Below are positions 1 through 64,000 of a DNA stretch of 64,000 nt, piece after piece. The translations under genes were made by a program, and so were the position numbers. A model generated the notes under the pieces. That model was not told the DNA's origin, did not search any database, and worked only from the letters and a program-made list of their open reading frames with translations. Position 1 is the first letter of the stretch; each line of letters opens with the position of its first letter. The stretch comes from Phallusia mammillata (lineage: Eukaryota): assembly GCA_965637545.1 (NCBI GenBank), contig OZ281496.1, positions 5,084,001-5,148,000 of the forward strand. The letters are read 5' to 3'.

Positions 1-91
1 CATCATCATCCGGCGTTTCTAGTTTGCAAATGAAAACATTAATATTAGCAAAAAGTGTGACCCGGTATTTTTTCTTTTGGGTAAGGATAAG

Positions 92-3489: not shown

Positions 3490-6400
3490 TTTGTTTATAT
3501 TCTACTGTAGATCTTGGGCATTTTTGCCCATACGAGGGAACCGGCTCCGATAATTATAGCAGCCAGAAGAACAAACATCACAAGTTGGAAGATGTTGTAA
3601 GCGGCATCATTTACATCATTTATTCATCTCTGTCTCCTGGAGTGTCTGCGATAAAAAGAATGTTTAACTTAGATAAACATATATGTGTGCGAAAGCATTT
3701 GATACTGGAACTAGAGATTAACACCTCAGACAGACTAAAAATAATGCCACTCTTGTATACACTTGGAAGTGGGCCAAGCTTGCGAGAGATTGAAAGCCAA
3801 TACGAGAAGTAACTTTAAACTTTGATTCCTGGTTAAGGCAATGTCGAGTATGTTTCTTACACACAAAACAAAACGAAAAAGTGACTTTAGGAGTCAAGCT
3901 ATGCATAAGTTTGCCAAGATGGTCGAGTTGTAAGTAAAACCGACTTGTGTTCAATAGTTTGTGGGTTCTAATACTGTCTCGGCAGCCTGTGTTTCCCTGG
4001 GCAAGAAACTTAATTTGCATTGCTCCAACCCAGTGAAAATCCACGTATTGCACTACATTAACGTCCCCTCCGCTATAACGTAGTTGCTATAAATCTAGCA
4101 GCTCGACCGTGGACTGACTGTTAGTTAACGCATTCAGGCGTTGCAGGCTCATCGAGGATTAAAATAAATAGAAACATGCGAATTATTTGATAATTGAGGC
4201 CTAATATAGCTGAAGTAAACATGTCCCCAAAGGTTTTAGTTGATAAATACAACAATTTGAGTAGTTGGAACATAAGCAACTAAAGTATTTGGTCCAGAAC
4301 TAAGTTAATATGTAGGAAAGAAGAGTTTAATTATTGTCTTGGTACCTTGCACAAGCAAATACTTGGTAGTTTTCACGATACGAACTGGCCCCGCAGAAAG
4401 TCGTTGGCTGCGTCCATTGTTGTCAACAGATCGTCTTTTTTTCCCACCACACATCTTCAAATCAGTTTCATATTAATATTTTTTTTCATGTATATATATA
4501 TATACTATTAAGGATAAACAAAGCAGCTAAATGGAATCAGAAAAAACTTAGGCATGTAATGGTTTTTCCCTGTTTATTTCAACTAAAGCAAACTTATTGG
4601 AGAATAAATTAATCGAATATAATCCACTTTACTTGCAATGATGCAAGCAGCTCGACGGCGGACTTATTATTAGCCTTACACACCACACAAACTCAATTCA
4701 CCTGTCCAGGGCATTCTCCAGTCGAGTTTTGACAGACGGTCACGTCGCAGTGGATGTAGATGAACTGTTCTGCATCAGTAAAGTTTGTCCACACAAAGCT
4801 CTTCAGCTTGAAAGTTGCAGAGTTGGATTCGTAATTTCGTATCAACATTTTTGCGCCGGCAACCTCACTTCCACTGGGTGGCGCAACACATCTAATAATA
4901 TTTACAAACATTTACGCAAGGTCAAATGCAATGTGCCGTTCAATATATTATGAGAAAGATCACACGTTGCAAATCAAACACAAGTAATGATGTAAAGCTT
5001 ACCCGCTTACTACAACAGGGTAGTTCGGCAAACCACTGGAGTTTTCAACGCGTGTCGCCCAACATTCTTCAAGCTGTATACAAAATGGTAAATAAATCAA
5101 ATGTAGAAACTCTATAGCACCTAAAAGATGCTTAGTGTAATGCAACAAGTGTAATGTGCATTTTTTATGAAACACGAACTAACATTTAGCAACCTCTGTT
5201 ACCTTAATGCTTTTGTTTTTACCTGGACAATAAAGTCATCGTTGCTTGCAGAAATTTCATCAAGTTTCACTTCAGCAAAAATGTAGTTAGGCACAGTGAC
5301 TTCTCCGGGAAAGCTTTCGTTGAAGTATTGGTTGGAAAAGAGATTTAAAGCAACGTCAAAGTTTCCTGTATTCTCAGCAGAAGTTTCAATGGATCTGTAA
5401 CAAACTTCTACGTTTGAGAAATAAATGGACACGTTCCTGAGGAATTAGTCACATCAATAGACGTCATTTACTGTTTTTGACTTCACCGTTTATTTTCCGA
5501 GTTGTTTGACTAGCACTAATAATAGAATAAAAATTAATCAACAGACCGTTGGAGTCTCTGTGCCATGTTTGGCATGTGCTTACACATGCAATGACATGTG
5601 TCATGATTATAGTTTGCATTCTACGTGCTTTGCAGCATGTTACATCTGCTATTGCATTACATGACAAGTATTATGTATATGTTTTGCATATTGTGCGCTT
5701 TGTTGGCATGTGACATGTTTGGCATGTGCCGTAGATGTCTTCTTACCCGGCTTGTGATTGGACGTTGGATGACGAGAGAAGTAGTTCCGAGTCAAACAGA
5801 CAAGTGACATTGAGCCTGTTTTGAACGTCGCGTTGGATCACTGCTGGGGACGGAGCTAGGAATCTCCAGATAAGGAAGGACACCGACACTTTTCCGTTCT
5901 CATTCTGTTAATAAATAAATAAAAAATATTTTTAGAAGGGTAGCAAGAAAGTTGACAGCAATAAAAAGCACCAAAACTTAATCGTAACTGTAAAAGCATA
6001 TAGAGCCAATAAATGATAAGCTGCAGACAGTGCACACTGTTTCGACCTATAAGGTCTCATCAGTGCAGCTGGAGACGAGAGATCGGCCGCATTGGCTAGT
6101 GTAGCCATTCAACGGCACTCCAGTTCACCAGCTGCACTGATGAGACCTTATAGGTCGAAACAGTGTGCACTGTCTGCAGCTTAATCGTAACTACTGTGGA
6201 CGAAATGAATATGTGTCGATACATGGTGATGCCTGCCTGTATTTTTACTAAATGACATGTTGGGTGGAAGTGGCTCGATGAAGAAAACAGAAATGAGTTT
6301 TACCTGATAGAGGCCTTCGCATTGTCCAATGTCAAACACGAACACCGGGTCTGACCCCGTGACCTTGCAGTGGTCATTAAGTTGAGAAAGGGGAGTTTGC

Positions 6401-9400
6401 CTGTCCAGTGCGATGTAAAGTGTGTCACCGTGTTCGTAATCTAATGTGTTCTGTTCATCAGCTGTTACTCTGCGAATGATGGCTTTATTAGTTTACATGG
6501 ACAACTATACAATACTGGAAACACGCCATCGCCAAATAAACTGACTATTTATCAGTATTTAGTCAGCTGCGCAACGTTAAAACGTTGTGGAGTGCAAGAC
6601 AGTGAGGATTCCACTGCTGGACAATTACTGAGCGCGCAGTAGCTTGTAATAAATGTTTCCTGCTTAAGGCGAGAGTTCTATTAAGTGACTTTATTGTTCA
6701 GGATTTCAAAAATAAACAAAAACATGCCTAAAAGCAAAGACAAACTTACGCGATGGTCAAGTCTTTGGTCCTGCACACACTCATTGATTGTTCCATTCCT
6801 ACAAAGAACTATTAGTTTGCATGTAAGATGTGGTTCTTAACCAATTTATTTTCGTTACCCATTAGAAGAAACCGGGGAGTTTTAACAACGTAAAAAAATT
6901 ACGGCTTGTCGAAAATTGTTAAATGACCACATACTGGTAAATCCATAAGTTTTAATTCCTGAAAAAGACTCGGAGTTTATTTTATGAACATATAAACTGT
7001 TAGAAACTGTCCCTCCTACAAATTACTGCTCAAACTAAGATTTTTCCTGTTGTTGAAATTTGAGTTCTACCTGATTCATTGTTGACTGTCGCATTAAATC
7101 CCTGTGCTTGACCGCTTGCGTCGCTGACAAAGATTAATGTAAGAATTGTTGCAGTAACTGTATGATTCAACCCCCCAGTATGATTTCCAGTCAATCTTTC
7201 CACATTACCTTCTTCATTCTGGAACTGAAAATAAAATCACCGACCAATGTATAAACCAGTGAACAAGTGTGATGTATGTTGTTGTTATAAAAGCTCAAAT
7301 GTATTTTTTGGTTTGGGTTCAGTTTTTGTTTCGCATCTAAATTCATGCTCAGTCAAATTAATTTCATCGTTTTATATTGGCAGATCTAACTTTAAACAAA
7401 AATTCTGTCTTGTTTAAAAATCGGGTGATGCCTGGTTTTTGGTTCTTTAGTGGGATTTAACGAAAATGACAAAACGACAATCACTTACGTAAAGAAAGTC
7501 GAATCCATCCTCGATGTTATAAGTGGAGAATTGAAACATCAAGGACGAGCTGCTTTGCAATTGAAATCTCCAAACACACCCAGCAGAAGCGGAGTAGTCA
7601 CCCGGAAACATAGGAGATAACAAATTATACGGCAGGCTGTCAACATCTTCACCACACTCTTCAGCTGAATTGCACATAAAGCGTCAATGGTTGATAGTTA
7701 CGCTGCGGACGGACAGTGCAGATGGTGCACAAAACTTTGGTTTCTAAACAATTGCCAAATTACTTATGCTTTCAAATCTACTCTGTGTTATGTAAGCTGG
7801 GGTGCCGTGTGGCCAATCTCTTGTCACCAGCTGCACTGAAGAGACGACAAAGGTTAAAACAGAATTAACAAGCTGGATCTAAATACACAAAATACATTTT
7901 GCAGACTCCCCAAATGGTGGGTGGTCAAGTACATGATCTCATATTTTAGATTAACACATAGTTAAGCTTTTCCGTAAACATCCGACTTACCGGGATCTAT
8001 AAACACTTCTATTTCGACTGTTGTCAGGTTGAGGACACATGATACATAGACAGACGAGCTTTCAACGATAACCGGAAAAGATAAGCCTCCACCTAACAAC
8101 GTACCAGCCAATGTGCCCGAATTGTCGATTCCCTCGTATATCTAGATTAAACCTAGATTGTATCTTAGTCAAAAAACATTTACAATTTTAGCAAAAAACA
8201 TTTAACGCTCTTTTGGTTTGATGTGCTACTTCAATGTAGGTTTTTTCTAGCCTTTTTTGTCCACTTAGATCTTACCTAATGGCACAATAGTAGGTCAGAG
8301 GCAATCACATACATACATTAGCAAACATAGGATATCACAAGTTACTTGTGTGGGTTCCAAAATCAACCAAATTAATGCCCATGTTCCAAGTTATCCAATG
8401 CAAAAGTGCGTAAATAAGCATAAAGTGAAGATGTTAAACATTTGAAAGATTAAAATCACAAATTTAGTAATAGATCAAAACCATCAACAACATGGCTTAA
8501 ACTGACGATCACTGTTTGCCTTTTTAACTAGAGTACAGTAAAACCAATGGACGATAAAATCCTTGGTTTAGCATTACACCAGTTGAACGACAAATTTGGT
8601 AAAATGCAACCTGGTGGACGAAACACTTGTTCGGTATTTTCTGAGGATCTTAATGCAACTTACAAACAAAACCATTACCGACCCAAGTCATAATATACGA
8701 AATTCTACCTGACAAAAGTTGTTTGTAGCAAGCTCTCCTGAAGGAAAATAAGCAACCAATCTAGGGAAGTCGTCTCGGGAAACAAAACTAATAGTCCACG
8801 TGTCACATATAGCTGGAATATATTCAGTCAGTCGTGAAGAGATTGCTAGCCCAACATCACACCGTGCATCTGAAACTTAACATTGCATTTGCCAATAAGA
8901 CAAAATTGAACCAATCCAAAAAATGTATATTAAGGTTAAACGAAATATGCCCTTTTCGTATTTTTATGGTTAAACGAATATGCCCCTTTTCGTACGTTTC
9001 GTATTTGTTTACAAATATTTCAACAGTTTTGATACAATTAAACATTTCTACGTTTAAGAACAGATATTGATTAGTTTTTCTTTTCAATTTTGTTTCCTGG
9101 TACCGCAGAGCACTAAAATTTCTAAGATTGAAACAGTATGGGTGCATTGTGCTGTTGTCAAACGAGGATTGTCTTCTCAATTTCGGGATTTTAGTTAAGA
9201 AACGGATTAAATATAGGTAATATTTATTGGGAATGGAACGTTCAATACTAAAAGAAAAAGGAATTTGAATCGAAAACGCCGCATAAGACGAGAGTGAAAT
9301 AAAGAGAAAAGAACCGTTTGAGGGTGAAGGTTCGTGATGTTCTGGGCGAAAAAAATCACCAGGAACGGTGATGGCACAACCGTAAACAAGTTCGGCCGAT

Positions 9401-12406: not shown

Positions 12407-13838
12407 TTTTATACAAATGAATGAACTGTATTACCATAAATTGTAACTGTAACAAGACAGTAAGTACATATCACGAAAACTAATTTCACACCCACAAGAA
12501 TCTTATCATGTTGCAAAAATCAAACAAAGTTATTGAATCAAGGGTGCCGAAAACTTAGTCTACATCGTTTCAGCAATGCCAGTATCATAACGTTAATACC
12601 TCTCAGCTAATACGCTTCGTAGGCTTCAGGTTTTCTCATATACATCAGAACACACTGCTGCTTACATAGAGCTTACCAACGTAAACACTGCAAACGCCGC
12701 AACACAATGCAGGTGATTCAAACCGGATCAATACAGTTCCATTGTTTGTTCTATAACCATGCAGTTCTATCTAAGCGTGTTAGGCGCTTGTTACGTTATT
12801 CACGTGAGTCGTCAGCGTTCTTTGTCACACTCTGTGGAAGCAAGCTGCAGATAGTGCACACTGTTTTGATCTATTAAGTCCTAACCATTGCAACTGCTGT
12901 TCCAACTAACAACACTCCATTTTGATGGGAGCAACAGGCTGAAGCAAATTGTTACTTTAAGGACTCTTGCTATATATATGTACTAAATCCCAAACTGGTA
13001 GTTAATTAATAAGATTCGCAGAATATATTTTCGGGTTTTAGCAGTTCCTGTCATTTGTATGTTTTCTTTAACATATGCTACGTCTCATTCAATGCTTAAT
13101 CATATAAACAACTTAATATATCTCAATCAATTTTCATATTTATTTTCAACAATTAATTAGATTCACAAGTTTTTGTAGAAAGTCTACCTAAAACTTAAAG
13201 ATGCATTCAGTCGCTAATTGATGCCGTGGGGGTTGAAACACGGACAACCAGTTGGGAAACTCCTATAGCCAGCCCGCAGACAGTGCACAGTGTTTTAAAC
13301 TGTCTGTGCAGCTGGTGACAAGACGTAGACCGTATTGACTCGTGTAGCCATCTAACGACACTTCAGTTTGTTGGGATTAACAGGCTGAAGCAAATTGTTA
13401 CATTTAAGACTTCATCTATATGTACGAAAACCAGAACTACAAGTTAAACAATAAGCGTCGCAGATAATATTTTCGGGTTTTCTGCAGTTTGTACCATAGT
13501 TAATTTCATTAGGCAAGACAGCATTTTGCCTAAATTCTACAAAAAGAACTTGCATATGAACTCGCAAATCGTTTGGCGCGCAAATTTAGATTTGAAATGG
13601 ATAATTACACATAATTTTATATTGGTGTTTAGTACTTGAAAAATACTGCTGTTAATTGTTAAGTAGAGCATATTTTGAAGCAAATCAGAAATGTGGCTGA
13701 ATTTAGTAAGACACCAAAAAATTGTTGACGCAAAGTTTGAAAAAGTTTAACAGGAATTTTTCTTCGACTCTCACAGACTTATTTAAGATTTTTCAGTTGC
13801 ATACCCCTGTTCTTTTGTTTAAAGGTATTTGTAGAAGG

Positions 13839-14787
13839 AACACTATGCACGGACTTGAAAAGTAGTTTAATCATAAACATTACTGCCAAGGTAGTGGTGT
13901 ATATGGAATACATCGTGTAGACGTTTCGACAATCTCTGTTGTCATCATCAGTACATGTTTTCAATCAAGCTGTAGAACACGGTACATAAAGCACTAAGGA
14001 AAAGAAAAGAAAAGAAAGGGAAGCCAGATGTGTGAAGTGACGTCACAGACGATAACAGGGAACGACGTTTAGAACGGTAGCGTAGACGAAAAGATAAGAA
14101 CCGGAGATATGGGTCAGGTGTTGAACAGACGCAAGGGCATGGAAACTGTGTCGATGTTGAGCTCGGGTTCATGCATTTGAAACAAAACCGCTTACGTCTT
14201 GTCCATGAAACGAACAAACTTTCACGGCATTTTCCTATAAAAGAGCGCCAGGAACACATCAAAAGAACTAACGTTGTTTACCGGTTGGTTTGCAACTGCG
14301 GCGCTTCATATATTGGGGAAACGCGGCGAAATCTCGCTGTAAGAATTAAAGAACATCGCATGGACCAAAAATCAGAAGTGTGCCGGCACATTTTATCGAA
14401 TCCGACACATAAAGTTAATTTTGCCGAGCCGGAGATTTTGGACGCAAACCAAGACCGCGTGAGACTGTTGTTTCTCGAATCGCTTTTTATTCAAAGGCAT
14501 GAACCCGAGCTCAACATCGACACAGTTTCCATGCCCTTGCGTCTGTTCAACACCTGACCCATATCTCCGGTTCTTATCTTTTCGTCTACGCCACCGTTCT
14601 AAACGTCGTTCCCTGTTATCGTCTGTGACGTCACTTCACACATCTGGCTTTTCCTTAGTGCTTTATATACCGTGTTCTACAGCTTGATTGAAAACATGTA
14701 CTGATGATGACAACAGAGATTGTCGAAACGTCTACACGATGTATTCCATATACACCACTACCTTGGCAGTAATGTTTATGATTAAAC
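13839..14787 (+). mobile_element. 5'-truncated Penelope-like retroelement: GIY-YIG endonuclease end, pseudo-LTR and inverted pseudo-LTR
   Basis: ORF 14171-14557 has NVVYRLVCNCGASYIGETRRNLAVRIKEH...LESLFI...LN. About 13862-14172 is the inverted copy of ~14499-14790. 13-bp TSD tatttgtagaagg at 13826-13838 and 14788-14800. Confidence 0.92.
14696..14737 (+). ncRNA. Minimal type I hammerhead ribozyme in the pseudo-LTR (antisense twin at ~13916-13958)
   Basis: TGTA-CTGATGA-T-GACAA cagaga TTGTC-GAAA-CGTC-TACA; palindromic short stem III as known for Penelope HHRs. Confidence 0.85.
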
Positions 14788-15032
14788 TATTTGTAGAAGG
14801 CTTCTAACTTTAACTGCTTATTTTTGCACCCAAATTACTGTTGTTAAAATCTGCATCAAATTTTGATAAGTTACATTTTCAAGTTTTTCTGATTTTTGCA
14901 AATCAACTCATTTGAACTCATCGTATCAGAACGATTGAATAAGCAGCAGAAAATTGTTATAGTGCACGTGGGCCAACAATCGCTTTAGTATTACTTGAAA
15001 AAAATGTATGCTGGTTTTCATGAAAAAACTAC

Positions 15033-15150
15033 TAGTGTGACATTAAATCCTTTCTGTCTCGGGTTTATGTCGCTGACAAACAAAACACTGTACGTTGTGA
15101 CATTCCAAGACGGTTGTTTAGTGTGGGATGTCCTTATGTGCAACATTGTT
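15033..15150 (-). pseudogene. Orphan CUB second-half exon relic
   Basis: Translates NVTTYSVLFVSDINPRQKGFNVTL, matching TVLFVSD..GFNATV of the paralogs; no partner exons nearby. Confidence 0.5.
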
Positions 15151-18119
15151 GTTTGTTGTACAGGTTTTTTGTTGCAAAAATCTGTTTATCGATGACATCA
15201 GCTTTTGATTTAAATCTTTAAATCTCTTGCTATACTAGGGTACATATCAGTGTAGACTGTAGACTGTAGACTGTAGAGCTACTTTACTAAGTTGTAATTG
15301 GTGGTGTTAAGAGCACAGTTATTTAAATAAGCAGAAGGACTGGGATAGAGTTACGAATTAAATTTAACATGAGAACTATGTTTACAGGTTAAATTTATTT
15401 TTTATTATAAAACCTCACCCCAACCCTAATCGCCCTAGCCATCAGCGCTTTCATACAATCTACTTTGAATATTTACAAATGCTCTTTGCGCCATCTATCG
15501 GTATATAGGGCAGATGCACTGAGATTTGTTACAAGACAACTACAGAAAAACATTACAATTCTTTTGTATCTTTAAGTATTGGCCGAATTAGGTGAAGATA
15601 TGTATATTAAACGACTGCGCGTTGGGCGCAGTTTATTGCCCTTAAAGCAAATAAAAAATGTCTTTGCTGTTCATGTAAAACTAGAGTTACGAAAATCTAC
15701 ACAATTTTCTAAACTTTCTAATGTTCTATCTTGTATTTTAAATAGGATACTTATGTTACCATAAACTTCCTCATTGAAACAGAAACCATTTAACTCTTGT
15801 AAGGCTCAAAATGAACACACACAGTTTCAATTGCATCCGATTATATTGTTCTACAGTAACAGAAGTCTTTGACAAGGTATATTTTTGACAACAACAAAGT
15901 AAAAAATGTTGCATGTTCTGTAATAGATAGTTAATGTTGCATGTTCTGTAATAGATAGCTTAAACTGTTAAATGTAAAAAGGATAAATGTAAAAATTTGT
16001 AGTATTTTTAAGCGTTTATAAGTCGACAGAAACAATACAATTTTAAGTTTCGTCTACAGACAAATTTGTTTATGTTTTGGACCTTGGGCATTTTTGCCGC
16101 ATAAAAGGTAACCAGCTCCGATAAATACAGCAGCCAGAGGAACAAACATCACAAGTTGGAAGATGTCCTCAGCTGCTTCATTTACTTCATCTCGGTCTCT
16201 TGGAGTGTCTGCGATAAAAAAATGTTTAACTTATATATATATGGGTGCGAGAGCATATTTTACTGGAGCTTAGCTCATCCAACAGACTAAAAAATACCAC
16301 TCTTATATATACTTCGATGTAAGCTTGCAAGAGATTTATTATCAATGCATTTCATTGCGACAAGACATAGACTAAAATCAGCCGATGGTGGGATTCGAAC
16401 CCACAAAATAATATTATTTATTATATTAATATTTTTTAAATAAATGTTTTGTATTTTGGTAGAAACTTTAATTTCTATTTCCTGGTTAAGGCATAGCCGA
16501 GTCTATTTCTTATGAACTGTGTAAGAAAGCGAAACACAAATCCGACTTTAGAAGTCAAGCCAAACAAGTTAATATTTAATTTCGTTAAATGTGTTTGGGC
16601 GACAGACTTGTATTCGAAAGATCGCGGGTTCTAATCCAGTCTAAACGACAAGTCCCAATAGGTTTGACTTGATCAATACCATAATTTGCTTTGTGAAAAC
16701 ACAAGCAACTGCAGTAGTAGTTACTGAAATAAGTTAAAGCGTACGAAAAGATACTTATTGTGTTGTTACCTTGCACAAGCAAATATTTGCTGGTTTGCAA
16801 AATGTGAACTGGTCTTGCAGAAAGTCGTTGGTTGCGTCCATTGTTATCAACAGATCGTCGTCCCACACCTCCACATGTCTGCGAATAGGTTAATATTAAT
16901 GCTTACCTAATAAGAAAAATGTTTATGGTCAAGAAGTTAGCACAAATTTGAAGTTATCGTAACATAAATGCATTCAAACTGGGATCAACACTGAAGCGTC
17001 GATGTAGAGCAGCGATAATGGCATAATTATCGATAAATCATAGTACGCCAGGCCTAATCAGCCGGTATCCCATACATTCACATATGACAAGGCCTTAGGT
17101 AGAAAATTCTAGCCTGCATTGGGATTCGAACCCACGTCATGACTCATTCCGGGAATCGCGCTCTACAAACTGAGTAACGCAGGCTCAGTGGAAATTCCGA
17201 CAAAGTCGAATCTCGAGCACCGTTGCATGCTGCATGCTGCATATGTCAGCTTCGTAGTAGGGCAAGGGGCGGCAACCTTTTGCATGCAACGGGCCAAAAC
17301 AATGATTTGATGAGTCTCGGCGGGCCGTATGACTTTTTACCTTTAAATTGCGCTCAATTCTAGTAATGTCGTTGGAACCTCTGAACGTCGTTGGAACTCT
17401 CTCTACAGCTTATTTTGATGGGGTTTGTCCCGGTATTTCGCAATGTATATTTGGCAAAGCAACCGACATCGCAATCAATAAACAAAAATCCTTTCTTAAC
17501 ACTTGTATTACTAATACTGGATGAAAAGCGCCAAAGACGCCCATCACGATAACAAAAATGTTGGTCGCACTACAAAGTATTTGCGGATTGAGTTAGGGCA
17601 CTTAAAACTAGGGTTGGCAAGCTGGTCAATTGACCGGTCAAATACGGTCAATTGACTGGCCAATTGACTGCACTTTATTTGACCAGTCAAATACTATTTT
17701 TTATTTTTAAAATCAAATGTGGTAAATTTTCTTGGACTTGCTTATTGGTTGTTGGAACGGGTAAATTATTTCTAATAACCCTAAGGAATAACATTTTAGG
17801 GCATACTCCTGTATTAATAACGGCTTTCAAAGCCAATATAGATGTGTTTTGTTCATTTGAAATCAATGCCAAAACAATCGAGCCGCGGGTTGGTCACCCC
17901 TGTTATAGTTGATCAAAAAACTGTTTGTAGCTATATATTTAGCTTATAATTGTCATGACTATATTTTTGTGGATAAGTTATTGCGATAAAGTACGTACAC
18001 ATCAAGCTTTTGTATTTTCCTTTTTAGTCATGAATGGGCAACAGCGTAACAGCATAAATTACGACTTTAACAGGATAACCGAGTTTTGCAGTTAAATCTC
18101 AGTCATTTTTGCAGTTAAA

Positions 18120-19030: not shown

Positions 19031-21172
19031 ATTCTTACATATAATTTTATATATAATCAGTGGTCGTCGACAAAAAAGATGCCTACTACTTGCGGGATAG
19101 ATCCTGTACCAAACACTAGATGTTAATCTGATGTAAGTTATATATTAAAACTAAAATTGCAATTTAATAATGTGTACAGTATTTGACCCATATTTGACCT
19201 ATTTGACAAGTATTTGACCGGTCAATTAACCAGATTTTATTTGACCGGTCAAACGCCCAACCCTACTTGAAACACTATCGCAACAAAGGTACTTGCACTT
19301 GAATTTGCGTATGTTGAGTTGTTTGTTTGTTTTAGCTGGCCGGTCCCCGACCCCTGTAGTAGTGCATCGACAGTTCGACTATATCAGCTGTGGTGAACAT
19401 ATTCATTCTGGGATCAGTCCTGAAGCGCCGATGCACACCAGCGGATCACGGCCTTATCGATAAGGACACCTTTAATAGGTCTGGTGTACTGCACTGTGAT
19501 TTGGTGACTGAAATATTTTTTTGTTTGAATTAAGGAGCCTATGAGTTCAATCTCGTCTTGGCCACTTGTGTTTTCTTAAACAAAAAAGCTAGAACGGCAT
19601 TGCACAAACCCAGTTGTATCTCATGGGTTGAGCTAAAGCTAAGTGAACATTTAATTGATAATCAAACAAGTCAAAAAAGATCCACCATACTTGCAATAAG
19701 GCAAGCAGCTCGAAGACAGACTCATTGTAATTATAATGCATTCGGTTATTGCCCGACCGGCAAAAACAAAATAAATGAAATAAACGAACTCAACTCACCT
19801 GTCCAGGGCATTGTCCAGTTGAGTTTTGACAGACGGTCACGTCGCAGTGAATGTAGATAAATTGTTCTGCGTCGGTAAAGTTTGTCCACACAAAGCTCAT
19901 CAGTTTGAACGTTGCAAAGTTGGATTCGTAATTGCGGTTTAACATCTTCGCGTTGGCAGCCTCACTTCCACTGGGTGGCGCAACGCATCTAACAATTTTG
20001 AGACAATCTTACGCATTGTGAAACACTTACTGTCGTTCAATTTTAGCATAGCGATACCACAAAACAGCAAATCCATAACCGGCACAGCTTACCGCTTTGT
20101 ACAATCTGATAACTCGGCAAACCACTGGAGTTTTCGACGCGTGTCGCCCAACATTCTTCAAGCTGTGCCCAAAAACAAAAAAAATCATATGAATAAAATA
20201 TTATAAAAAAATATTTGGATGTTCAATATTGAATCACGGAGTAAGGTTTGTTTTAGATGGATTTCAAAATTTTTAATCAAATAAATACATGAGGAGGCAG
20301 TTTTGTTAGAAATATAAAACCAAGAGTTTACATACCAGAGTTTTAAGTTGAACCGGCCTGTGTTTACCAACTTGCTTATAATACGTTTGTGTTTACGTTT
20401 TACCTGGACAATAAAGTCATCGTTGCTCGGAGAAATTTCTTCAAGTTTAACTTCAGCAAAAATGTAGTTGGGCACATTGACTTCCCCAGGCAAGCTTTCG
20501 TTGAAATGTTCGTTCGTAAACAGATTTAGAGAAACGTCAAAGTTTCCTGTATTCTCGGCCGAAATCTCAACAGATCTGCACAAAGTTTTAAAACATTTGT
20601 TCATACTGTGGATTTATTTTAAGTTCGTTTCGGTTCTTGTTTACTTTTCCGTAATGCTTTGCTAGCATTGATGATTAAACTAACAGCCCATTGTGAAACA
20701 ACTATAAACTGCGACGAGAAACATTACTTTCGTGTGACATGTAACGAGTGGCATGTGACATGTGCCCTTGTTGTTTTCTTACCCCGGTTGTGGTTGAACG
20801 TTGGATGACGACAGAAGTTGATCGGCGTCAAATAAACAAGTCACATTGAGCTTGTTTTGAACGTCGCGTTGGATCACAGCAGAAGTTGGAGCTAGGAATC
20901 TCCAGATCAGGAAGGAAACCGACACCATTCCGTTCTCATTCTGTTAATACATAAACAAAAACATTCAAAGGGTAGCAAAAATTTAACCGCAATAAAAAAA
21001 AAACTTATCGTAACTACTACTCTCGAAAAAAGTATGTGTCGAACATATCTGTATAGGTGATCCTGGTCTGTATGGTTTTAACAAACGTTGCATCTAAATG
21101 CTAAATGACGTGTTTGGTAACAGTGGCTCGATGATGAAATCTAAAATGGCAAAAAAATCAGGATCGTTTTAC

Positions 21173-21269
21173 CTTGTAGAAATCTTCCGGATCTGACCCC
21201 GTGACCTGATGAGTGCTGGTTCTTCTGCTGGAGGTCCATTGGGATCGAAGTTGTCAAATGCAAATGGGC
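21173..21269 (-). pseudogene. Chimeric exon: family-X terminal exon 5' half fused to the ZP-N exon 3' end
   Basis: Reads GPFAFDNFDPNGPPAEEPA, then gtcacggggtcagatccgg (ZP VTGSDP, out of frame), then the ZP donor site. Confidence 0.75.
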
Positions 21270-26636: not shown

Positions 26637-29600
26637 AAATACGATCCCACCACTGAGTGAAGGCTTTTGTCCCTATCATCGTGCTTTGAACAGATGTTGT
26701 AGTGTGTACAGGAGTACATCTGTAAGTCTGGGAGCAGATTAAAGTCAGAATTAACAACTGCATCAAGGCTGTTTACACATCATATGCAATCACTTATTCA
26801 TCGGCTGGATTGAAACGATTGCCAGCAACAATAAAGTTATCACTAAATATGCAGAATTACCCAAACTTTGTAAGTATTCTTTAAAATATGTCAGACAGTT
26901 TTTACAAAACCTTAAATTGATTGTTTCATAGGCTCTGACTAGTCCGTATCGTCGTGCTGATAACTTCATGGTGGTAAGTACATCTTCAAATATTATGTTA
27001 AATTGTTACCAGTTTATGAGCCTTAAATGCCAGAAAGGTAAAAAATAAACATACTTCTATTATTATTGGCGTTCATGTAAAACAGCAAACGGTGCTCATA
27101 GTGCGGTAGGCTTATAAAGGTTCGAAACAAACCGGCCTCTGAAGCATGACATAGGCTGAAACAAGCTGCCTTGACGTGGGATTCAAACCAACTATACGAG
27201 CTGTTGGGTCTCGCTATACAGGCCCAGTGGTGAGTTCGTAGAAAGTCGAAATGTAAGCACAGTTGCCTGCCTCGTATGCTGCACATTTCAGCTTTGTAGT
27301 AGGGAATTTTTCGAAAGGTTTGTTCGAAAATTGGTTTTGCAGACATTTGACTGTTAGCTTTATTATTTACGCTTAAGGCCTTGTGGATTGTACACACGCC
27401 AAGTTATTGACAGGTATTGCACTAAATTATTCCTTTTTTCAGCAGATCCCGTCTACCCCACAACAAATGTTCCTGCCTCAGCCGGTAAGAACGTATGGAA
27501 GTAATGAGGTATTTTTTGAAAATTGCGGGTACATAAGTAACTACACCGGAAGCACCTTATGTTTCTTCTATGAACCTAATAATGACTTCAAATCCAAATT
27601 GAACTGTAAAGCGTACATACTTAGAAAATACATTCTGGAAAAATCAAATCAATTGAGTCCAATGGATTGATACTTAAAAATTAAATTCGTTTAAACCTTG
27701 TGTAAAACTCAAAATAAATTATGTTAGTGGGCAAATAGCAGTCCGACAGAATTAAATTAACATTTTTTAATGCGTTTCAGGTTCCGTTTGTTTCACAACA
27801 ATATCTTCTGCCTCAGCCGGTAAGAACATGGAAACAGTTTATCCAAAAATTAATGCAAAAACTGTTTCCATTTTTACAAAAATGTTGAGTGTATTTTATT
27901 AATAGGTAATAACAGTCTGAATTACGGTGTTGCTTGTTAACGTTTTAAATAAGTTTCGATCGAAACAAATGCTGTCTTTCTCAAAAACTTGGTAACTTAC
28001 TTATTTTTGTTAGCATACAAGACAGTTCTTTTTTTAAAGTTTCAAATAGATAAGTGACGATGAAACACTTTGCACTACCAACTACTTCACCTGCATAGGC
28101 TAAGCGCATATTGATCATTTTGTGCAAAACATTTTTCACATTTGGTTTATTATATATTTGTAACACTTAGAGTGAAGAATATGAAGGCTTCCCGACCGAC
28201 AAAATTGGTCATTGAAAACAAAAGGCCCCATAATAAATAAACACTAATTTGGCGAGCGACTTTACCAAACTATTTTCTGTCATTCCTTTAATATTTTGAC
28301 AAACGTTTGGATTTAAAACATGTCTAAGGGAATATAAATTCATAACTGGGATCAGCCCTGAAGCGTCGATGCAGACCAGCGATCACGGCACACTCATATA
28401 TAAATCACAATTATGGGCTGATCCCAGTTATGAATTGATGTTCATCTTTAACTGATACTGGTCAATCTGGCGATCCCCTACTACGAAGCTGACATGTGCA
28501 GAATACGAGGCAGGCAACGGTGCTTGTGATTCGACTTTCGGCGGATTCTCCACTGAGCCTGCGTAGCTTAGTTGGTAGAGCGCGAGTCCCGGAAAGACTC
28601 CTGTCGTGGGTTCGAATCCAACCGCAGGCTAGATTTTTCCAGTCTACGCCTGATTTTCCAGTCTACGCCTGACCGGCTGATTCGGTATGACGCCTTTAAT
28701 GGGCCTGGCGTACTGTGATGTCTAAGGGATTGTCATTTTTGCAACGATGGCATATGGATAAAATGATAATGGAAATATAATTTTGACTTTGATTAGGAAA
28801 AGCATTCTGAAAGAGCTATCCGTACAAGTTTTTTCTCCTTTATGATTTTTAGCCGCAGTACAATCCTTTCCTTCAAGGCGGTCAGATAATGATGGTAAGT
28901 ATATTGTCAAGAAGAAAATATGTTAAAACTAAATGACGATAAATGTATTACTCCAAAGAATGTGAAAAGCAAATGAGCAATTTAGTTTTAAAGTTTCTCA
29001 ATCTTTGTTTGAAGTTCGTCTTTGCCGCTTTTCTATAGGAAATAAACACTATTTTAAATATTTTTTAATATGTAAAATTTTTTGCTGCCTTGGTTCTTGA
29101 AGAAACGAGTAACATAAATTATTTAGTTTAAATTTCTTTTAAACATTCAGCGGGTTGGCTCAATTCCTTAATTAAACGCTTTGCCTGTAAATAATTTGTA
29201 GGTCTCAAAATTATTCACACGTTGATTTTCAGGCACCGCCTGTTTTACCACAATATTTTCTGCCTCAAACGGTACGAAGGTTATTAAAAAAAGAATAATC
29301 ATTTTCTTATGGAGCGTGGTGATAAAAAGTTTTATAGTAGGAGATAATTCGAATTCATCCATTTTTTACAAACTTTTTTTAATCCGCTAAATCTTTTTGC
29401 CATTTTATTTTATTGCCTTAATGATATAAACTCGTTTTTGTTCAAGATTACTATCTAAACCAGTGGTTCTCAAACTTTTTATTGTCGGGGCCAAATGGCA
29501 TTTTTTAAGTGTGTAGGGTGCCGCAAACAACGAAACCTTGCAAAAAATTACTTTTTACTTTGAAAGCTAAAATAGCAATTTTTGGTGGTTTTCTGGGGTC

Positions 29601-36400: not shown

Positions 36401-39400
36401 CAGTTCGACCGTATCAGATAAGATGAACATATTCATACTGGGATCAGCCCTGAAGCATCGATGCAGACCAGCGATCACGACATACATATCGATAAATCAT
36501 AGTACCTCAGGCCTATTAACGGTGTGTACCGAAACAGACGGGCACCAAGCATTCACATCAATATGGCAAGGCGTCAGCTAGAAAAAGCTAGCATGCGATG
36601 GGATTCGAACCCACGACAGGAGTCTTTTTTTCAGGCCTACGCCTTGCCGTGTGGTGGTGAATGCTTGGATGACCAGCTGATTCGGCACACGTCTTTAATA
36701 GAACTGGCATACTATCATTTATCGATATGTATGCCGTGATTGATGGTCCGACGCTTCAAGGCTGATCCCACTATAAATATGTTCATCTTAGTTGTTATAT
36801 AAATGTTTGTTTTTCGTCTCTTTACCCGATTTGTGTATAAATTTTGGATGACGAGATAAGAATTCCCGCGTCAAATAGACAAGTCACATTGAGCTTGTTT
36901 TGAACGTCGCGTTGGATCACGGCAAGGGATGGAGCTAGGTATCTCCAGATCAGGAAAGACACCGACAACATTCCGTTTTCATTCTGTACAAGAGCAGGAA
37001 AATTACATTATATTTCAAAATAGGCGGTCTTTCATTATGCAGCAAAACAAAGATTAAACACTTTATTATTATCCATAACTATACAATGTTTATTGGTTCT
37101 AATAGCTAATGTTTTCTAAAATATAATAAGGACATATTGTCTATGTATAAATCAGTATTGCTTATCCAGCAGTTTTATTGTAAACAATCAGTTTTATTGT
37201 ATTGTCTATGTGTTCAGAACAAAAATCCAACTTTACCTTAAAAGCACATTTGCATTGGCCAATGTCAAACGTAAACACTGGGTTTGACCCTTTGACCTTG
37301 CAGTTGTCATGGAGTTGAGAAAGGGGGGTTTCCCGGTCTAATGCGATGTAAAGTGTATCGCCGAATTCGTAATCTAATGTGTTCTGTTGATCAGCTGTTA
37401 CTCTGCGAATATTGGACTGTTAAGTTTTTGTACATTATAAAAGTCTAGACAACTTCCAAACATTTATACTATGTTGCTCTATTTATCGCGAAAACCGATT
37501 AGAACACCCATTGCAAACTGATAAGTAAAATGTCTGAATCAATAAAAAACTAAAAACAAGAGATTACAAGCCTATGGCAAAAACAGGCAGTGCACCAAAA
37601 TCCTTGAAATACTGTATTTTTTTAATAATCTTCTAGTTATTACAGACTTTCAAAAAATTAGCAATAATTTTCAAAAAGAATCAAAAAGAAAATATTAACT
37701 TACCTGATGGTCAAATTTTCAGTCCTACATTCAACAGATGGTATTCCTACACAAAAAGCATTTTTCAACCGTGATAATAAAGTTCGAGCACTATTCTAAT
37801 TTTTATGGATGAAAATTTACTTCTACATATTAAATTTGTTATTTCATTGCTTTTATTAAATTTGTTATTTCAAACATTTCATTGCTTTTATATTGTGACA
37901 ATAATTTAATGGATTTTATTTAGTAATTTTATTATATAAAATGTTTCAGCTTGGCATCAGCAAACTAACAAAACGATATAAGTTGGTAAGACCAAACCAA
38001 AAATAAGAACTTGATGTCAAAATAACCCGTCTTGAACTCAAATTTTTTAGTGCTATGTTATTGACAAAACAAATATTGAAATTACATTTTCAGACCACCC
38101 TTAACCTATAACTCATGCTGGCTGAGTTCGAGTGTGTTTTTATCATTTGCATGTCAAAATTTTGTGCCTGAAAGCAGATTTGCCTCACCTACTGTCGCAT
38201 TAAATCCTGGGAATTGCGTGTCACCGTCGCTCACAAACAAGACAGTGAGATATGTTGCTGTCACCGTGTAATCAAATGACCCAAGCGACCCAACAAATTT
38301 GTCCACATTACCTTCTTCGTTCTTGAACTGAAAACAATAGAGTATTTTTTATTTTCAGTATGTTCAGAAATGCTAACATTTAGCCGCAGGGGGCACACTT
38401 GTTGTCCTAAAAACGGTCGCATACCTCCTTAAGGCCGCAAGTTTCTCATCATTAAATTAGGCGCTTGTCAAAAATATGATTTCTACCACCTTAAGCAAAG
38501 TTATTGCTTTTTCAATATTAGAAGCAAACTTTTCCCCACTGGAAAATCAGTTTATAATAAATATGTTACTCAAAAATTCATTAAAAAAACAAACTTAAAC
38601 ATGTATTAATTTCAAGCGTATTGCGGAAAATTTCGTAAAAATAACATACCGTTTCCATTCGATTATTTGCGTCGACAATATCTCCCGGAATTTTAGGTGT
38701 ATATTAGTTAAGACACTTACGTATAAAAAGTCGCAGCAGGTCTCAGTGTAAAATGTGGAGAATTGGAACACCAAGGTTCTGCTGCTATTCATTTGAAATC
38801 TCCAAACACAACCAGCATCGTTGGGGTAGTAACTAGGAAACATTGGAGAGAGTAAATTGTACGGTATATCAGCAACATCTTCCCCGCACGAAGTAACTAT
38901 AAAACACAAAAAGATTAGCTTGAGACAGTGCAACTAGTAAGAATAGTTCCAAAAAGTTGTTTTGACCATCGAGTTGTCAATTTTGTGTGGCTTATATCTA
39001 GTTGTCGATCCGATAACCAGTGGAATATCACCACTGTTTAAGAAGTGCTTATAAACTACGCTTTTATTGTACATCAAACAATTGTTTGCAAATTATACTT
39101 TTATTCAATTAGTTGTTTCTTTTGTTTGCAAAATAATAGATTTGACATCATTTTGTTGATACCGAACCGAAAACATGTTTCTTTCGCATGCTTTAAGTTT
39201 CGGTTATAAAGGAATCGTAAACCTGACTTACATGAACTTATGCGAAACGACACAGATTCCGTTGTGAGGTTTGTGACACAAGATATATAAGCAGATGAGC
39301 TTTCAACGATAACCGGAAAAGATAAGCTTCCACCTTCCAACGTTCCAGCCAATTTACCTTGTTTGTCGGATCCCTCGTAAATCTAGATTTTTCTATTTAC

Positions 39401-57876: not shown

Positions 57877-58149
57877 TTTGGTCGTTGTGTTCGACAAAAG
57901 GCAACTGTTTTATATCACCAACTATATCTACTACTATACAATGCAAATAAATTAATAAACATACTAATTTAATACAACCAACATAACTTACAACTATATG
58001 TATTTGCACATCAACTAGTACATAAGCATATATTTGTCTGTCAATATTTAACATTTTCTATTTAAACTTCCTTGAGGTCGGCACCCTTGTTAATTTAAGT
58101 GTGGCTACAACTTTATCTAAATCATTTATCCAATATAAGTATTATAATG

Positions 58150-59450: not shown

Positions 59451-61837
59451 CATAACTCATGTGGTTCGACTGTATTATGGAACCTGTGTTTAATTATTTC
59501 GTTCAACTTCTAACCGTTTTGGTTTTATTACTGATATTGAAACATGAACCTTTAATCCTTCAAATACATAGGGTAATAAAGCATAATTTTTTAAAATTTG
59601 CTGTTATTCTTTACATAAACTACCTCCCATTTAATGCCTTATCACATTCAAAACTTAGTATATATCAATTTGATAGTTACTACCCACATAGGCGCCGAGT
59701 GGGCAGTGGCGGGGTGGCGCCTCAACCTCGCGTTTTTAAAGCACGGTGGCGGCCATCGTGAATATTTTGGTTAGTTTGATAGCAGTATCGTACGAAAAAT
59801 CGTAAAATGTGAAGAAAATCAAGAACGATTTTGCATTTAAACAAGGGTGCTGGCGAAAAAACAACAAAACGTGCCTCCAAACTGCAACCCGTTTGGGATA
59901 ATGCCTTGTTTATGACATCAAACACACAGTTGTTTGGCAGTGAATGGATGATCATTATTGTGTACAATGCGAATGTGTTGTAATTAATAATTATCTCAGT
60001 TGGTACAAAGCTAAAAGATCGTGACCAAACATTTCTTTTTTGAACGTTGCCAAACCAACGGTAACTCTTCAGCAACGTGTTTCAAATTTATATTATTTTA
60101 AACATTCTCTCATAAATGATTTTGACGAACGTTGCATTTTATTGGAACTTTGTTAGGCTTTGAGCTCTTGTTGTTGCACGCATTAGTGACGTCACATTTA
60201 GTGACGTCATATATTACGTCCGCCACCTTGCATTTTTGTAAAACTCGGCGCCTATGACTACCCAAAACAAAAATTCGCGAAAAGCCCGGCCCACTTTTTA
60301 ACCTGAGTTCAGCCTGCATACATTAATAGTTAGGGTGGGATCTTTTTATTAAAGTTAAAGGTTGGGAAGAATCTTTTTATTATTACAATGCTGAGTGCTT
60401 GTAACTGGGTTAAGTGGTTTACCCAGAACTCATTCCCTCAACTGTTTATTGTATGTGAAACCTTTTGAGACACATTTGTGAAAACTTTTTACTTGTTTAT
60501 ATTGATCTACAGTTATTGGATTGGTTCTGTTTCTCCCTGCTATACCGTTTGGTGATCAAAGGAGCAACGTACGGTTCTGTACAATACAAACAGATTGCTT
60601 ATTAGAAATATGGTTCATGTTCTGCGAACCCGTCTCTGTGTAGAACATATAGAACAAAGCGTACATGTTAATGAGCCTGTTTGCCTCTGTTAGGTTTAAA
60701 AGTTGAGTTTTTTTGTATTGGTTTATTGCGACTTTGTTACCATATATCAGACATTACTTCATTACAGCAGAAATAACCCATCAACTGCATCTATGTCTTT
60801 GAGAAGAGTCAAATTAATGCAACGGGTTAATTGACACTCATTAAAAAGCGTATACAAGAACGTCACTCCTTTGGGGTTTTTGAGAACCTAAAATTCATAT
60901 TTTTACCGCAAGCGCTAGAGCGTTTGTAAGACCATCAAAGCAAATACTTGCCTTGACATCTACTACATTATTTTAAATTAAACGACAACTACTACCCTGG
61001 CAGTGGCGATTTCATTAAGTGTGGTTGTTGTTTGGTTTAAACCAACTAAACAGATTATCTGTTAAGAAGTTTCCTTCCAATGCAACGAGTCCAAGTCTTT
61101 TCACAGCTGAGTGAAGTCATTAAAAGAAACGCATCAAGTTGGATTGGAGTTCAGTCACTGACTCGTGTCTCTCCATTATTTATTTTTATTTGCATTTTAT
61201 TGCGACACGGCACACTCATATATAAATCTTTGCACGCCAGGCCAATTAAAATTCATACCGAATCAGCAATTGAGTTCAGTTGTAAGAGCGTAAATCCCGT
61301 AAAGTCACATATCGTGCGTCCAAATTCCACCGCAGGATTGTTTTTCAAGAATGCGCCTTGCTGTAAGAATGCTTAGACGACCGGCCAAATAGGAATGGCA
61401 CTATCAATATATCCGACCTACTATGACTCAAGGAAACATCTAACTTTAAAACTTCTTGCTCACACTCCCTTTCCTTTTCACGATTATGCCACGTCACTTC
61501 CAATTAGTCAGAAAATTGTGATATGACGCAGCGAATGCTTTGACGTTTCTGTTAATGTTAGTCTGTACAGTTATTGTTTCTTTAAGATATTTTGTGAGAA
61601 AGATTACAGTGTAAGTTTACGTGCAGTTTTGTCAATGCTAAAGATTAGTGTAACTTTGCTTTCCGGAAAGGATTTGCTAATTCGTGTAAATTTGCACATT
61701 TATTAGGTTTTGAAGGTTGGTTCGCAAGGCAATGATATACTTTGAACTATTTAGTTCAGATATATTCATTTCTTTTGTTGATATCATTTAGTATGACTTC
61801 AAACAAGCACTTTTCTTCTTGTTTTTTTCATTTCAAA

Positions 61838-62125
61838 GTTTGTCCGACTCGTTTTTTCATCAAATGATTGATGGATTTGACTAAAATTTACACAGATGGT
61901 AGATATAGTTATGTAGATGTGCATGCCACTTTGTTTGTGTTTGTAACCCCAGTATTTACCCGCTAGCCCCCTTAAAGGGGTATTTTCCCCTGAAGTTTGC
62001 CCGACTCGTTTTTCAATTAAATGTTTGATGGATTTGAATAAAATTTACACATATGGTAGATACATTCATGTAGATGTGCATCCCACTTGTTTTTGTTGAT
62101 AACCCCCTGTATTTACCCCGCTAAT
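61838..62125. repeat. Two tandem ~155-bp units, probable transposon-internal repeat
   Basis: tttgtccgactcgtttt..gatggatttga..aaatttacac..tagatgtgcat repeated. Confidence 0.75.
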
Positions 62126-62658
62126 TAAACGCTTTGCAGTCTAAAAACAAAACTGCATCACATGACTTGTTATCGAAACCAAAGATATTTTTTTATCTTT
62201 ACGAAAATGAATGCAATTTTTGTTTTCAATTTTGTCATCGAACGTTTTTTTTACTGTAGAACATTTTCATGATTGTCTTGTCATCTGTACTTTCGGGTGA
62301 TGTTACATCGCACCATATTTGTACAGTACAACATTTTTCAAGTGTCATTTTGAGTCAAAAGGGAACGCAAATATACAAAGTCTTTTGTAAAATGGACAGT
62401 CACACAACGCTTGTTTAAAGTGGAATCGAGAGTTTGTGGCAACATCTCTCATTATGTTGCACTCGAATAAATGCTTTTTTTGTTTTCTCTCTTCGAGTGA
62501 GCACATCACAGCTGTGCCACTTGTCAGCGGTACGAATTTGTTTGGTTACTTCATTCCATAAACGTATATCTCGTTTGTCTGCAGTCACTATGAGTGAGAT
62601 TCCAACGCAATCGTTCTCACTGATATTACCTTGTATTATACATAATATCCAAGAGCAA

Positions 62659-63167
62659 TCACATGATGCCAGGCCCATTGAAGGCGCCATACCGAATCAG
62701 CCGGTCACCAAGCATTCACCACCATATGGCAAGGCGCAGACTGGAAAAAACTAGCCTGCGATGGGATTCGAACCCACGACAGGAGTCTTTCCGGGACTCG
62801 CGTTCTACCGACTGAGCTACACAGGCTCAGTGCAGAATCCGCCGAAAGTCAAATCACAAACACCGTTGCCTGCCTTGTATGCTGCACATGTCAGCTTCGT
62901 AGTAGGGGATCGCAAGATTGACCAGTATCAGTAAAGATGAACATAAATTCATAACTGACCCTACTACGAAGCTGTTCGAATTCCATCGCAGGCTAGATTT
63001 TTCTAGCCTGCGCCTTGCCATATGATGGTGAATGCTTGGTGACCGGCTGATTCGGTATAGCGCCTTCACTGGGCCTGGTGTACTGTGATTTATATTTGAG
63101 TATGCCGTGATCGCTGGTCTGCATAGACGCTTCAGGGCTGATCCCAGTTATGAATTTATGTTCATCT
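62659..63167. mobile_element. tRNA-like repeat (cloverleaf 62754-62826, minus strand) with inverted terminal segment and 13-bp TSD
   Basis: TSD tatccaagagcaa/tatcccagagcaa at 62646-62658 and 63168-63180; ends ...atgttcatctt as in the 36166 copy. Confidence 0.88.
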
Positions 63168-64000
63168 TATCCCAGAGCAAGGGACTTAAACCCTTTTAGC
63201 GAAATCGAAAGCGCTAGTCGCCAATTGGAAGTGTGAAAGCAAAACAAGTTTAATGGAAAACTCCTTACCCTTTTATTTAAAAGATATATCCCGTCACATA
63301 CATAGGCTTAAAAAGTGGCCTCAGTGGCAAATTAAATGCCCAACCTTGCTCTCGAGATCAATAAATACAAACAATCGCCAGCAAATGCAATGCATACAAA
63401 TGGTAGCATGTAAACAGATGCACTTCTTGTCCCTAGAGTTTGTTTGCAATGCAAATAAAATATGTTGTAAATTAAAGTTAGCATCTAACACATTTGGTAC
63501 ATATTTATACAATCAATGTTGAAATCGTGCCCCTTTTAAACTTAAATCACACTCCACATCCAAAAAATTGTTACCATTGGGGGATCAAAACGCTCTCTTG
63601 CAGTCCCCTGTCCTACAGTGATCCGGATAGATTGCCTTTTATATTTTGCTCTCTTCGATAGTGGTGCAATCGTGTATCTGTCCATAGGTAGCATAAATAT
63701 GTAACTTACCGTACGGTGAGAGCTGAATGAATTTGGCGTAAATGAATTTCTGGTAATGTATTTAAATATACGCTTGTAGTACTTTAGCGATTTTCAATTG
63801 CTCAGTTGTGTGACAAGATATAAAGTTCTGATTTAATCCACTATTTGCGTGGTAATAAATTAAACCTTGCATTACAATTTAAATACCTTCGTTTTATCTC
63901 CTGGTTATTACAGAAATACGAATACGGCACTTGAAATATGTTGCACGAAACAATATTGTCAAAAATTGTCATTACTTCTGAGCTGTTGCGTCACAAAAGA

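Follow-up and report, generated by a model that had tools for sequence, protein, structure and literature searches.

Penelope-type insertion scars at non-coding hammerhead and tRNA-like repeats of Phallusia mammillata

Introduction

Which machinery spreads repeats that encode no enzyme of their own? This question is raised by a 64,000-nucleotide stretch of the Phallusia mammillata genome (contig OZ281496.1; C3:5084001-5148000 of the 240-Mb assembly), hereafter the window, in which one 5'-truncated copy of a Penelope-like element (PLE) with a GIY-YIG endonuclease domain lies among four copies of two unrelated non-coding families, one characterised by a hammerhead ribozyme (H family) and the other by a tRNA-like module (T family). 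The window consists of AT-rich animal DNA (36% GC), and a repeat search showed that a gene unit of roughly 15-17 kb is present in it four times. An initial annotation had interpreted the three families as a helper/passenger system, in which both non-coding families would be mobilised in trans by the reverse transcriptase (RT) and the endonuclease (EN) of a PLE.

The way in which PLEs choose and copy RNA is still poorly understood, the sole biochemical study (2024) being devoted to one lizard element. In this anole PLE, both DNA strands are cleaved and extended, reverse transcription starts at two internal RNA sites with a tail between them, and RNA downstream of the starts is required for activity (PMC11167929). 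PLE insertions with a tail at one of their ends and with an inverted, 5'-truncated copy have also been described, as have PLEs that are non-autonomous (PMC8557442). Furthermore, in a paper (PMC7229834) and a preprint (10.64898/2026.07.22.740005), retrozymes are proposed as PLE passengers on the basis of their co-distribution and of the similarity of their pseudo-LTRs (LTR, long terminal repeat). In what follows, END A and END B designate the two fixed 3' ends of each family and the tail is the stretch between them. The genomic sample comprises the letters of 60 loci of the T, H and PLE families; beyond these loci, match tables and exact-pattern lists were used.

Insertion anatomy in the window and genome-wide

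All five insertions of the window are bordered by target-site duplications (TSDs) of 11-13 bp and possess a head-to-head inverted arm that overruns the other arm (Table 1), and none of them ends in poly(A) or in a simple repeat. Direct reading therefore confirmed the absence of poly(A) and the presence of an inverted arm running past the terminus, both of which had been noticed in the initial annotation. Its TSD length of 12-13 bp at all five insertions stands for the presence of the duplications and needs two amendments: the TSD of the PLE measures 11-13 bp, its first 2 nt being ambiguous with the element end, and two TSDs (T copies 2 and 3) contain one mismatch. The overrun corresponds to the outermost 30 nt in H (5990-6019), which represent the tail and extend past the end of the other arm, and to a tail of 24 nt in the PLE (13839-13862), in good agreement with the 25-30 nt first reported for these two elements. 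In T, it had been described as most of a monomer, and is instead a constant stretch of about 75-80 nt (unit positions ~276-355 of 355). Two empty sites were found: a single copy of the 13-mer of the H site is kept at ~21010-21030 in a paralogous gene unit, and, at the site of T copy 1, position 28322 is contiguous with 28721 in one contig of run X13, the kind of which is not on record.

The same anatomy was found outside the window. Indeed, (i) T, H and PLE copies end at two fixed positions, 5' ends are variable, and up to 3-4 tandem units can be present inside one TSD pair; pattern counts for T yielded 946 END-A-proximal sites, 555 of which run into the tail and 238 past END B, so that A is the end of about 391 arms and B that of about 317; (ii) inverted insertions generally combine one A end with one B end, as observed in ~16/16 PLE pairs, ~20/22 H insertions and, for T, 9-10/12 insertions of a BLAST sample and 10/14 of an unbiased pattern list (the exceptions in the latter being 2 B/B and 2 apparent A/A), mixed pairs being expected by chance in about half of the cases given the near-equal use of A and B; (iii) close inverted pairs are all arranged (-,+), with their 3' ends outward (18/18 in H, 5/5 + 14/14 in T, i.e. 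37/37); (iv) direct repeats scoring at least 10-11 bp border 17/29 T and 19/25 H sampled copies, repeats of at least 10 bp appearing in 0.7-2.3% of the trials of a mismatched-flank control, and the exact TSDs have a median length of 13 bp in T (n=16) and 12.5 bp in H (n=20). In the unbiased lists, at least 23% of the H loci and at least 18% of the T loci are inverted, these shares being minimum values, since a locus was counted only when the probe was present in both of its arms; the majority of T copies are simple 5'-truncated insertions.

The features by which dependence on a PLE can be recognised, namely two internal starts (tail), outward inverted arms and a TSD of fixed length, are thus present in both T and H, which were probably inserted by PLE-type machinery of the same kind as that of the window PLE. 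The initial annotation had named three patterns that would point to another origin, and the genomic copies display different ones: TSDs of ~12-13 bp and inverted copies with a one-sided tail instead of families mostly devoid of ~13-bp TSDs and inversions; two fixed internal end positions instead of poly(A) or LINE-type ends (LINE, long interspersed nuclear element); and, again, TSDs of ~12-13 bp in T and H instead of a Helitron-style insertion without TSDs. The helper/passenger interpretation is therefore supported by the insertion scars, the PLE footprint of T and H being found genome-wide. That a PLE protein acts in trans, from which PLE lineage it comes and what the tRNA-like module contributes are matters that we infer.

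Proposed mechanism

By analogy with the anole PLE in vitro, a dimeric RT/GIY-YIG protein would cut both DNA strands ~12-13 bp apart, and reverse transcription would be primed by either 3'-OH. Copying would begin at END A or at END B, both of which would be fixed internal sites of an RNA longer than one unit. Extension of one strand would produce a simple 5'-truncated copy, and extension of both strands would allow the two cDNAs to meet head to head, leaving an inverted pair with its 3' ends outward, a single TSD and, usually, one A and one B end. In such a scheme, two cDNAs primed on two strands, one per start site, would account for the one-A-one-B rule, for the outward orientation of the 3' ends and for the presence of a single TSD. 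Furthermore, the target context of H is symmetric: A makes up 62% of the 4 nt preceding the TSD and T makes up 53% of the 4 nt following it, against a background of ~32%, as would be expected if a dimeric nuclease nicked each of the two strands behind a run of A.

The GIY-YIG Penelope-like element

The insertion at 13839-14789 appears to be a 5'-truncated copy of a canonical-looking, endonuclease-bearing PLE, with a putative telomerase-like RT upstream of EN in the ORF of the family. Its open reading frame (ORF), which genome copies match from residue 12 onward, contains a GIY-YIG domain detected by Pfam PF01541 (E 1.6e-5, 25.6 bits vs a cut-off of 22.6), and the nearest Atlas clusters are animal GIY-YIG fragments. 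Copies of the family are 94-98% alike, and uninterrupted frames of 748, 614 and 549 aa end in the EN domain. The one-end tail and the adjoining inverted 5'-truncated copy, which characterise PLEs, are present in the window copy and in the ~16/16 genomic inverted pairs mentioned above. A minimal hammerhead-like motif was read by eye in the 3' untranslated region (UTR); Rfam did not recognise this minimal core at E<=1. In the minimal hammerheads of PLEs, helix III measures 1-2 bp (PMC4209133).

In these respects, the window PLE resembles the EN-containing PLEs of the Penelope/Poseidon type, e.g. PAc of Anolis (PMC11167929, PMC8557442), which share with it a C-terminal GIY-YIG domain, an optional one-end tail, an adjoining inverted 5'-truncated copy and termini inside a tandem unit, and whose hammerhead motif in the 3'/pseudo-LTR region may have a counterpart in the motif read by eye. 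It differs from them by its tail of 24 nt, vs 30-40 nt in published elements, and by the putative status of its RT. The genome also encodes at least 5 diverged EN lineages with 40-63% identity, some of which have open frames of 415-543 aa.

The hammerhead family

The H unit is a non-coding tandem unit of 282 nt without LTR, primer-binding site or polypurine tract. Its positions 195-262 are predicted to adopt the textbook three-helix hammerhead fold with the conserved core, and Rfam Hammerhead_3 matches it with 26.8 bits (E 0.0012), under the gathering score. An exact-pattern count revealed 1,026 H hammerhead cores genome-wide, and sampled genomic copies are ~99% alike. A match of Rfam mir-759 to the H palindrome (32 bits vs a gathering score of 100) was rejected as an inverted-repeat artefact.

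The H family is an animal non-LTR retrozyme, a kind of element already known. Indeed, the two studies devoted to these retrozymes (Cervera & de la Pena 2020, PMC7229834; Li et al. 2026, 10.64898/2026.07.22.740005) describe a non-coding tandem unit with a type I hammerhead and abundant, young copies with TSDs >4 bp, as in H, and both propose a dependence on PLEs. Searches of these two papers revealed no mention of the tail, of the one-A-one-B rule or of inverted arms, and literature searches retrieved no paper on the H family in sea squirts.

At locus L053, an H array of ~4.5 units lies inside a duplicated ~110-nt flank (L053:901-1013 and 2349-2570). The ends of this array are odd, being located at unit positions 205 and 224 and not at A and B. 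It adjoins a different, Ser/Leu-type tRNA-like sequence, which may belong to another family resembling short interspersed nuclear elements (SINEs) or to a composite element.

The tRNA-like family

The T unit is a tandem unit of 355 nt (reference L030:1171-1525), and an exact-pattern count gave 1,404 T modules genome-wide, the copies differing by 1-2% from their consensus. The tRNA-like module occupies unit positions 107-180, has perfect A and B boxes and scores 55.3 bits with the Rfam tRNA model; a T5 run follows it, at 184-188. A cmscan search of two tandem T units at E<=1 recovered the tRNA only and no ribozyme, and the statement of the initial annotation that a tRNA-like module stands in place of a ribozyme is thus true as anatomy. 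T is consequently not a retrozyme, even though its insertion works alike, and it probably represents a ribozyme-free counterpart of the retrozyme family. As far as its sequence indicates, such a ribozyme-free variant would be new, since literature searches found it in no paper, nor any other PLE passenger bearing a tRNA. Because the divergences of T, H and PLE copies are low, all three families are young at the same time.

Owing to the T5 terminator, the template RNA spanning END A and END B is not the short RNA polymerase III (Pol III) transcript, and must come from read-through or from another promoter. The tRNA-like gene could supply cuts made by host tRNA processing, or an openness dependent on Pol III and TFIIIC, and in this way make or mark the template. 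Contigs presumed to derive from RNA cover the T element without its flanks, mostly as pieces within longer contigs, from which ends, strand and circles are not readable. In run X5 (presumed RNA), one contig corresponds throughout to the 74-nt tRNA-like module 28557-28630, with 3 differences, which hints that a separate small RNA corresponds to the module or to its parent tRNA. The anticodon loop of the module has a C at position 33, where tRNAs have U. A pile-up of cDNA stops in the T-arm of the module was considered and dropped, as it consisted of 6/42 inner ends at unit positions 143-160 in a query-biased sample.

Several known systems can be compared with T. Like T and H, the non-autonomous PLEs of Chlamydomonas (MRC1 and other Chlamys derivatives; PMC8557442) are non-coding, form pseudo-LTRs and insert as several copies arranged head to tail, and PLE machinery is what moves them; they have 3' sequence in common with autonomous families, whereas T and H have none in common with the window PLE, and they carry no tRNA-like gene, unlike T. 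Like tRNA-derived, LINE-dependent SINEs, T is short, abundant and non-coding and has a tRNA-like module with Pol III boxes. It differs from them in that the module has a central position in a tandem, permuted unit and ends with a T5 terminator of its own, and in that LINE-type or A-rich tails are replaced by two fixed termini and inversions of PLE type. In schistosomes, the Sm-alpha and Sj-alpha repeats, reportedly described by Ferbeyre and colleagues in 1998, are short SINE-like retroposons with Pol III-type features and an active hammerhead. T shares with them the short length, the Pol III-type features and a tie to ribozyme-bearing repeats, but unlike them has no ribozyme recognised by Rfam.

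Table 1. Features of the three families in the window and their termini (positions are those of the window unless a unit or a locus is named; END A and END B, fixed 3' ends).
Feature	Position	Strand	Remarks
H insertion, left TSD	5977-5989		cttaatcgtaact, identical 13-mer at 6180-6192
H arm ending at END B	5990-6125	-	unit 282->147; 99% to 282-nt unit
H arm ending at END A	6126-6179	+	unit 197-251; holds complete type I hammerhead
H hammerhead parts	6130-6136; 6137-6144; 6174	+	stem I; CUGAUGAG; cleavage after C6174
H insertion, right TSD	6180-6192		matches 5977-5989
Further H fragments	7808-7845, 12842-12896, 13303-13376, 30274-30303		comparison with H unit
PLE insertion, left TSD	13826-13838		tatttgtagaagg, (ta)tttgtagaagg; right copy 14788/14790-14800
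Inverted 5'-truncated PLE arm ending at END B	13839-14190	-	97-99% complementary (inverted-repeat search)
C-terminal part of PLE ORF	14186-14554	+	GIY-YIG endonuclease domain and stop codon; Pfam PF01541
PLE 3' UTR ending at END A	14555-14789	+	direct reading and genome copies
Minimal hammerhead-like motif in PLE 3' UTR	14701-14732	+	CUGAUGA..stem II..GAAAC GUC, read by eye
T copy 1, left TSD	28320-28331		atgtctaaggga, repeated at 28718-28729
T copy 1, inverted arm (tail only)	28332-28409	-	unit 349->270, END B outward; 97.5% to unit
T copy 1, direct arm ending at END A	28415-28717	+	unit 321-354, then 1-275; tRNA-like module 28557-28630
T copy 2, left TSD	36154-36165		g[c/t]tgttatataa; right copy 36791-36802, one mismatch
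T copy 2, ~1.3 head-to-tail units, END A outward	36166-36627	-	tRNA-like module 36245-36318
T copy 2, inverted arm ending at END B	36628-36790	+	unit ~157-355
T copy 3, left TSD	62646-62658		tatcc[a/c]agagcaa; right copy 63168-63180, one mismatch
T copy 3, arm with END A outward	62659-62957	-	unit 276->1, then 354->331; tRNA-like module 62753-62826
T copy 3, inverted arm ending at END B	62974-63169	+	unit 160-355
Older decayed T copy	16961-17262	-	78% to unit
Further T fragments	853-1061, 19394-19452, 27213-27304, 61202-61361		comparison with T unit
T termini (355-nt unit)	unit ~272-284; ~347-355		END A; END B
H termini (282-nt unit)	unit 250-256; 282		END A; END B
PLE termini (354-nt query)	query ~328-336; 354		END A; END B
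TGATACTG in T	unit 3-10		e.g. window 28452-28459
TGATACTG in H	unit 3-10		e.g. L053:1773-1780 (-)

Search for a link between enzyme and passengers

The best local match between T and H is the 8-mer TGATACTG, located at nt +3 to +10 after END B in both families. It is kept in 36 T and 22 H sampled copies and nearly kept in the older copies of the window; its other occurrences in 264 kb are at chance level (14 vs ~8 expected), and the probability of a match at the same offset in T and H by chance was roughly estimated at ~0.2-0.5%. In H, a predicted fold allows TGATACTG to pair with the start of the tail, A and B then flanking one hairpin. In the anole element, protein binding was mapped to the region corresponding to the position just after END B (PMC11167929), and by analogy the TGATACTG region is where the protein should bind. 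A more specific proposal, which is put forward tentatively and is rather doubtful, is that T could be the first described SINE-like partner of a PLE, that its embedded tRNA-like gene could take the role of the hammerhead and that, through TGATACTG just 3' of the distal RT start, it could depend on the same helper as H.

Several results weigh against the reading that T and H were inserted by PLE-type machinery of the kind found in the window. (i) The initial annotation had suggested aligning the 3' termini in search of a common structure recognised by the RT; apart from the 8-mer of T and H, Smith-Waterman comparisons against shuffled sequences revealed no significant similarity among the 3' ends of T, H and the PLE. 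The 3' sequence or structure in common with an autonomous PLE that is expected of a dependent element is therefore absent from T and H in the comparison with the window PLE, the only one made; the argument from a common 3' end, customary for pairs of SINEs and LINEs, does not hold for the window PLE, which may thus not be the helper. (ii) The PLE tail is followed by TGATACTG in 0 matches; if TGATACTG matters, the helper would accordingly be another PLE lineage. (iii) In a Pfam RVT_1 search for the RT of the 748-aa frame, the best 150 matches all belong to other retroelements (LINE and LTR RTs), and the genome therefore holds many other potential helpers. (iv) The TSD length of the coding family is that of one insertion, the window copy. 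(v) The A/B rule is a tendency in T (~75%) and not a law. (vi) The comparison of target motifs, which had also been suggested, showed a clear succession A-rich, TSD, T-rich in H and a weak version of it in T (42% and 40% vs ~32% background, small n); the target context thus differs between the two families and provides no proof of one enzyme. (vii) No direct link between enzyme and passenger emerged from these comparisons, and mobilisation in trans is deduced from the scars.

Alternative explanations

A first alternative is that the scars are of PLE type but that each passenger is served by a different PLE lineage, the window GIY-YIG element being a bystander. This is a serious possibility, somewhat short of an even chance: the genome has several diverged EN lineages, some with long open frames, the window PLE has no 3' similarity to T or H, its tail is not followed by TGATACTG, and the target contexts of H and T are unlike. 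On the other hand, the presence of TGATACTG at the same offset after END B in T and H points to one helper for both, and all three families were active in the same period.

According to a second alternative, which is improbable, T and H would be what remains of longer coding PLEs after heavy 5' truncation, namely their 3' ends (pseudo-LTRs). PLE insertions are indeed mostly 5'-truncated, and at one locus, of which segmental duplicates exist on C3, the 3' region of a PLE is directly joined to T units. At this locus (L030:575-1880, i.e. C3:~4480230-4481535), a PLE 3' part, 87% identical to the window family and with a broken frame, stops 36 nt before END A and passes, through a 2-nt overlap (AC), into a T unit at its position 309; 2 further T units come next and terminate at END B. 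The same structure is present in L029 and in ~8 more places of C3, between 3.89 and 5.07 Mb, which look like segmental duplicates. The junction could have arisen if the RT switched templates, passing from T RNA to PLE RNA; a TSD was looked for around the L030 chimera and not found, and for this reason the chimera cannot be called a single template-switch event. Being restricted to a ~1.2-Mb stretch of C3 (~3.9-5.07 Mb), the junction appears to go back to one event that was later copied, and this restriction, together with the missing TSD and the broken frame, argues against longer coding PLEs as the source of T and H. So do the 29 T and 25 H copies whose 5' border lies within the repeat or the inverted arm and is followed by the TSD, and the presence of up to 3-4 units per TSD pair with no common non-repeat sequence upstream.

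A third alternative, in which T would be a conventional tRNA-derived SINE, mobilised by a LINE and inverted through twin priming, is quite unlikely. It would account for the tRNA-like module with its A and B boxes, many LINE-type RTs with long open frames are present in the genome, and twin priming of L1 type also yields inverted 5' parts. T nevertheless displays neither the 5' tRNA head driving the transcript nor the LINE-derived, poly(A) or simple-repeat 3' tail of LINE-dependent SINEs: its tRNA-like gene lies mid-unit with its own T5 terminator in tandem, permuted units, and its two fixed internal termini (~275 and ~355) are without A-run. Moreover, the outer end of the inverted arm is the alternative terminus and never a random internal point, and the TSD length is tight and equals that of H. 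Finally, DNA-level elements (foldback elements, miniature inverted-repeat transposable elements or Helitron-borne tandem repeats) instead of retro-copies, a reading suggested by the palindromic form of some copies and the tandem units, are very improbable, as about half or more of the T copies have no inverted arm or terminal inverted repeats, 5' ends vary while 3' ends are fixed, and the TSDs measure 12-13 bp.

Implications of a probable insertion by PLE-type machinery

If T and H were inserted by PLE-type machinery, three unrelated, young and abundant templates with a PLE footprint would form a natural comparison set. The features common to the three families should be what the enzyme reads, namely the A/B starts, cuts staggered by 12-13 bp, 3' ends that point outward and perhaps TGATACTG. 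The proposal that retrozymes are PLE passengers, for which co-distribution and pseudo-LTR similarity formed the earlier basis, gains structural support from these data. Furthermore, the tRNA-bearing T family would indicate that efficient spread of the PLE type is possible without a hammerhead, which bears on what the ribozyme is for.

Additional observations

No spliced leader (SL) was found at the 5' ends of T or H copies with an ascidian SL sequence as query. The sole SL-like match, at L043:2909-2924, is one mismatch from this sequence and is followed by GT, as in an SL gene, and it is probably an SL RNA gene. In the window, a 33-bp tandem repeat of 5-6 copies with 67-94% identity, which may be a coding repeat, is located at 107-304, and the GC content jumps locally to 47% (vs ~36%) between 10001 and 12000, with a GC skew of +0.15.

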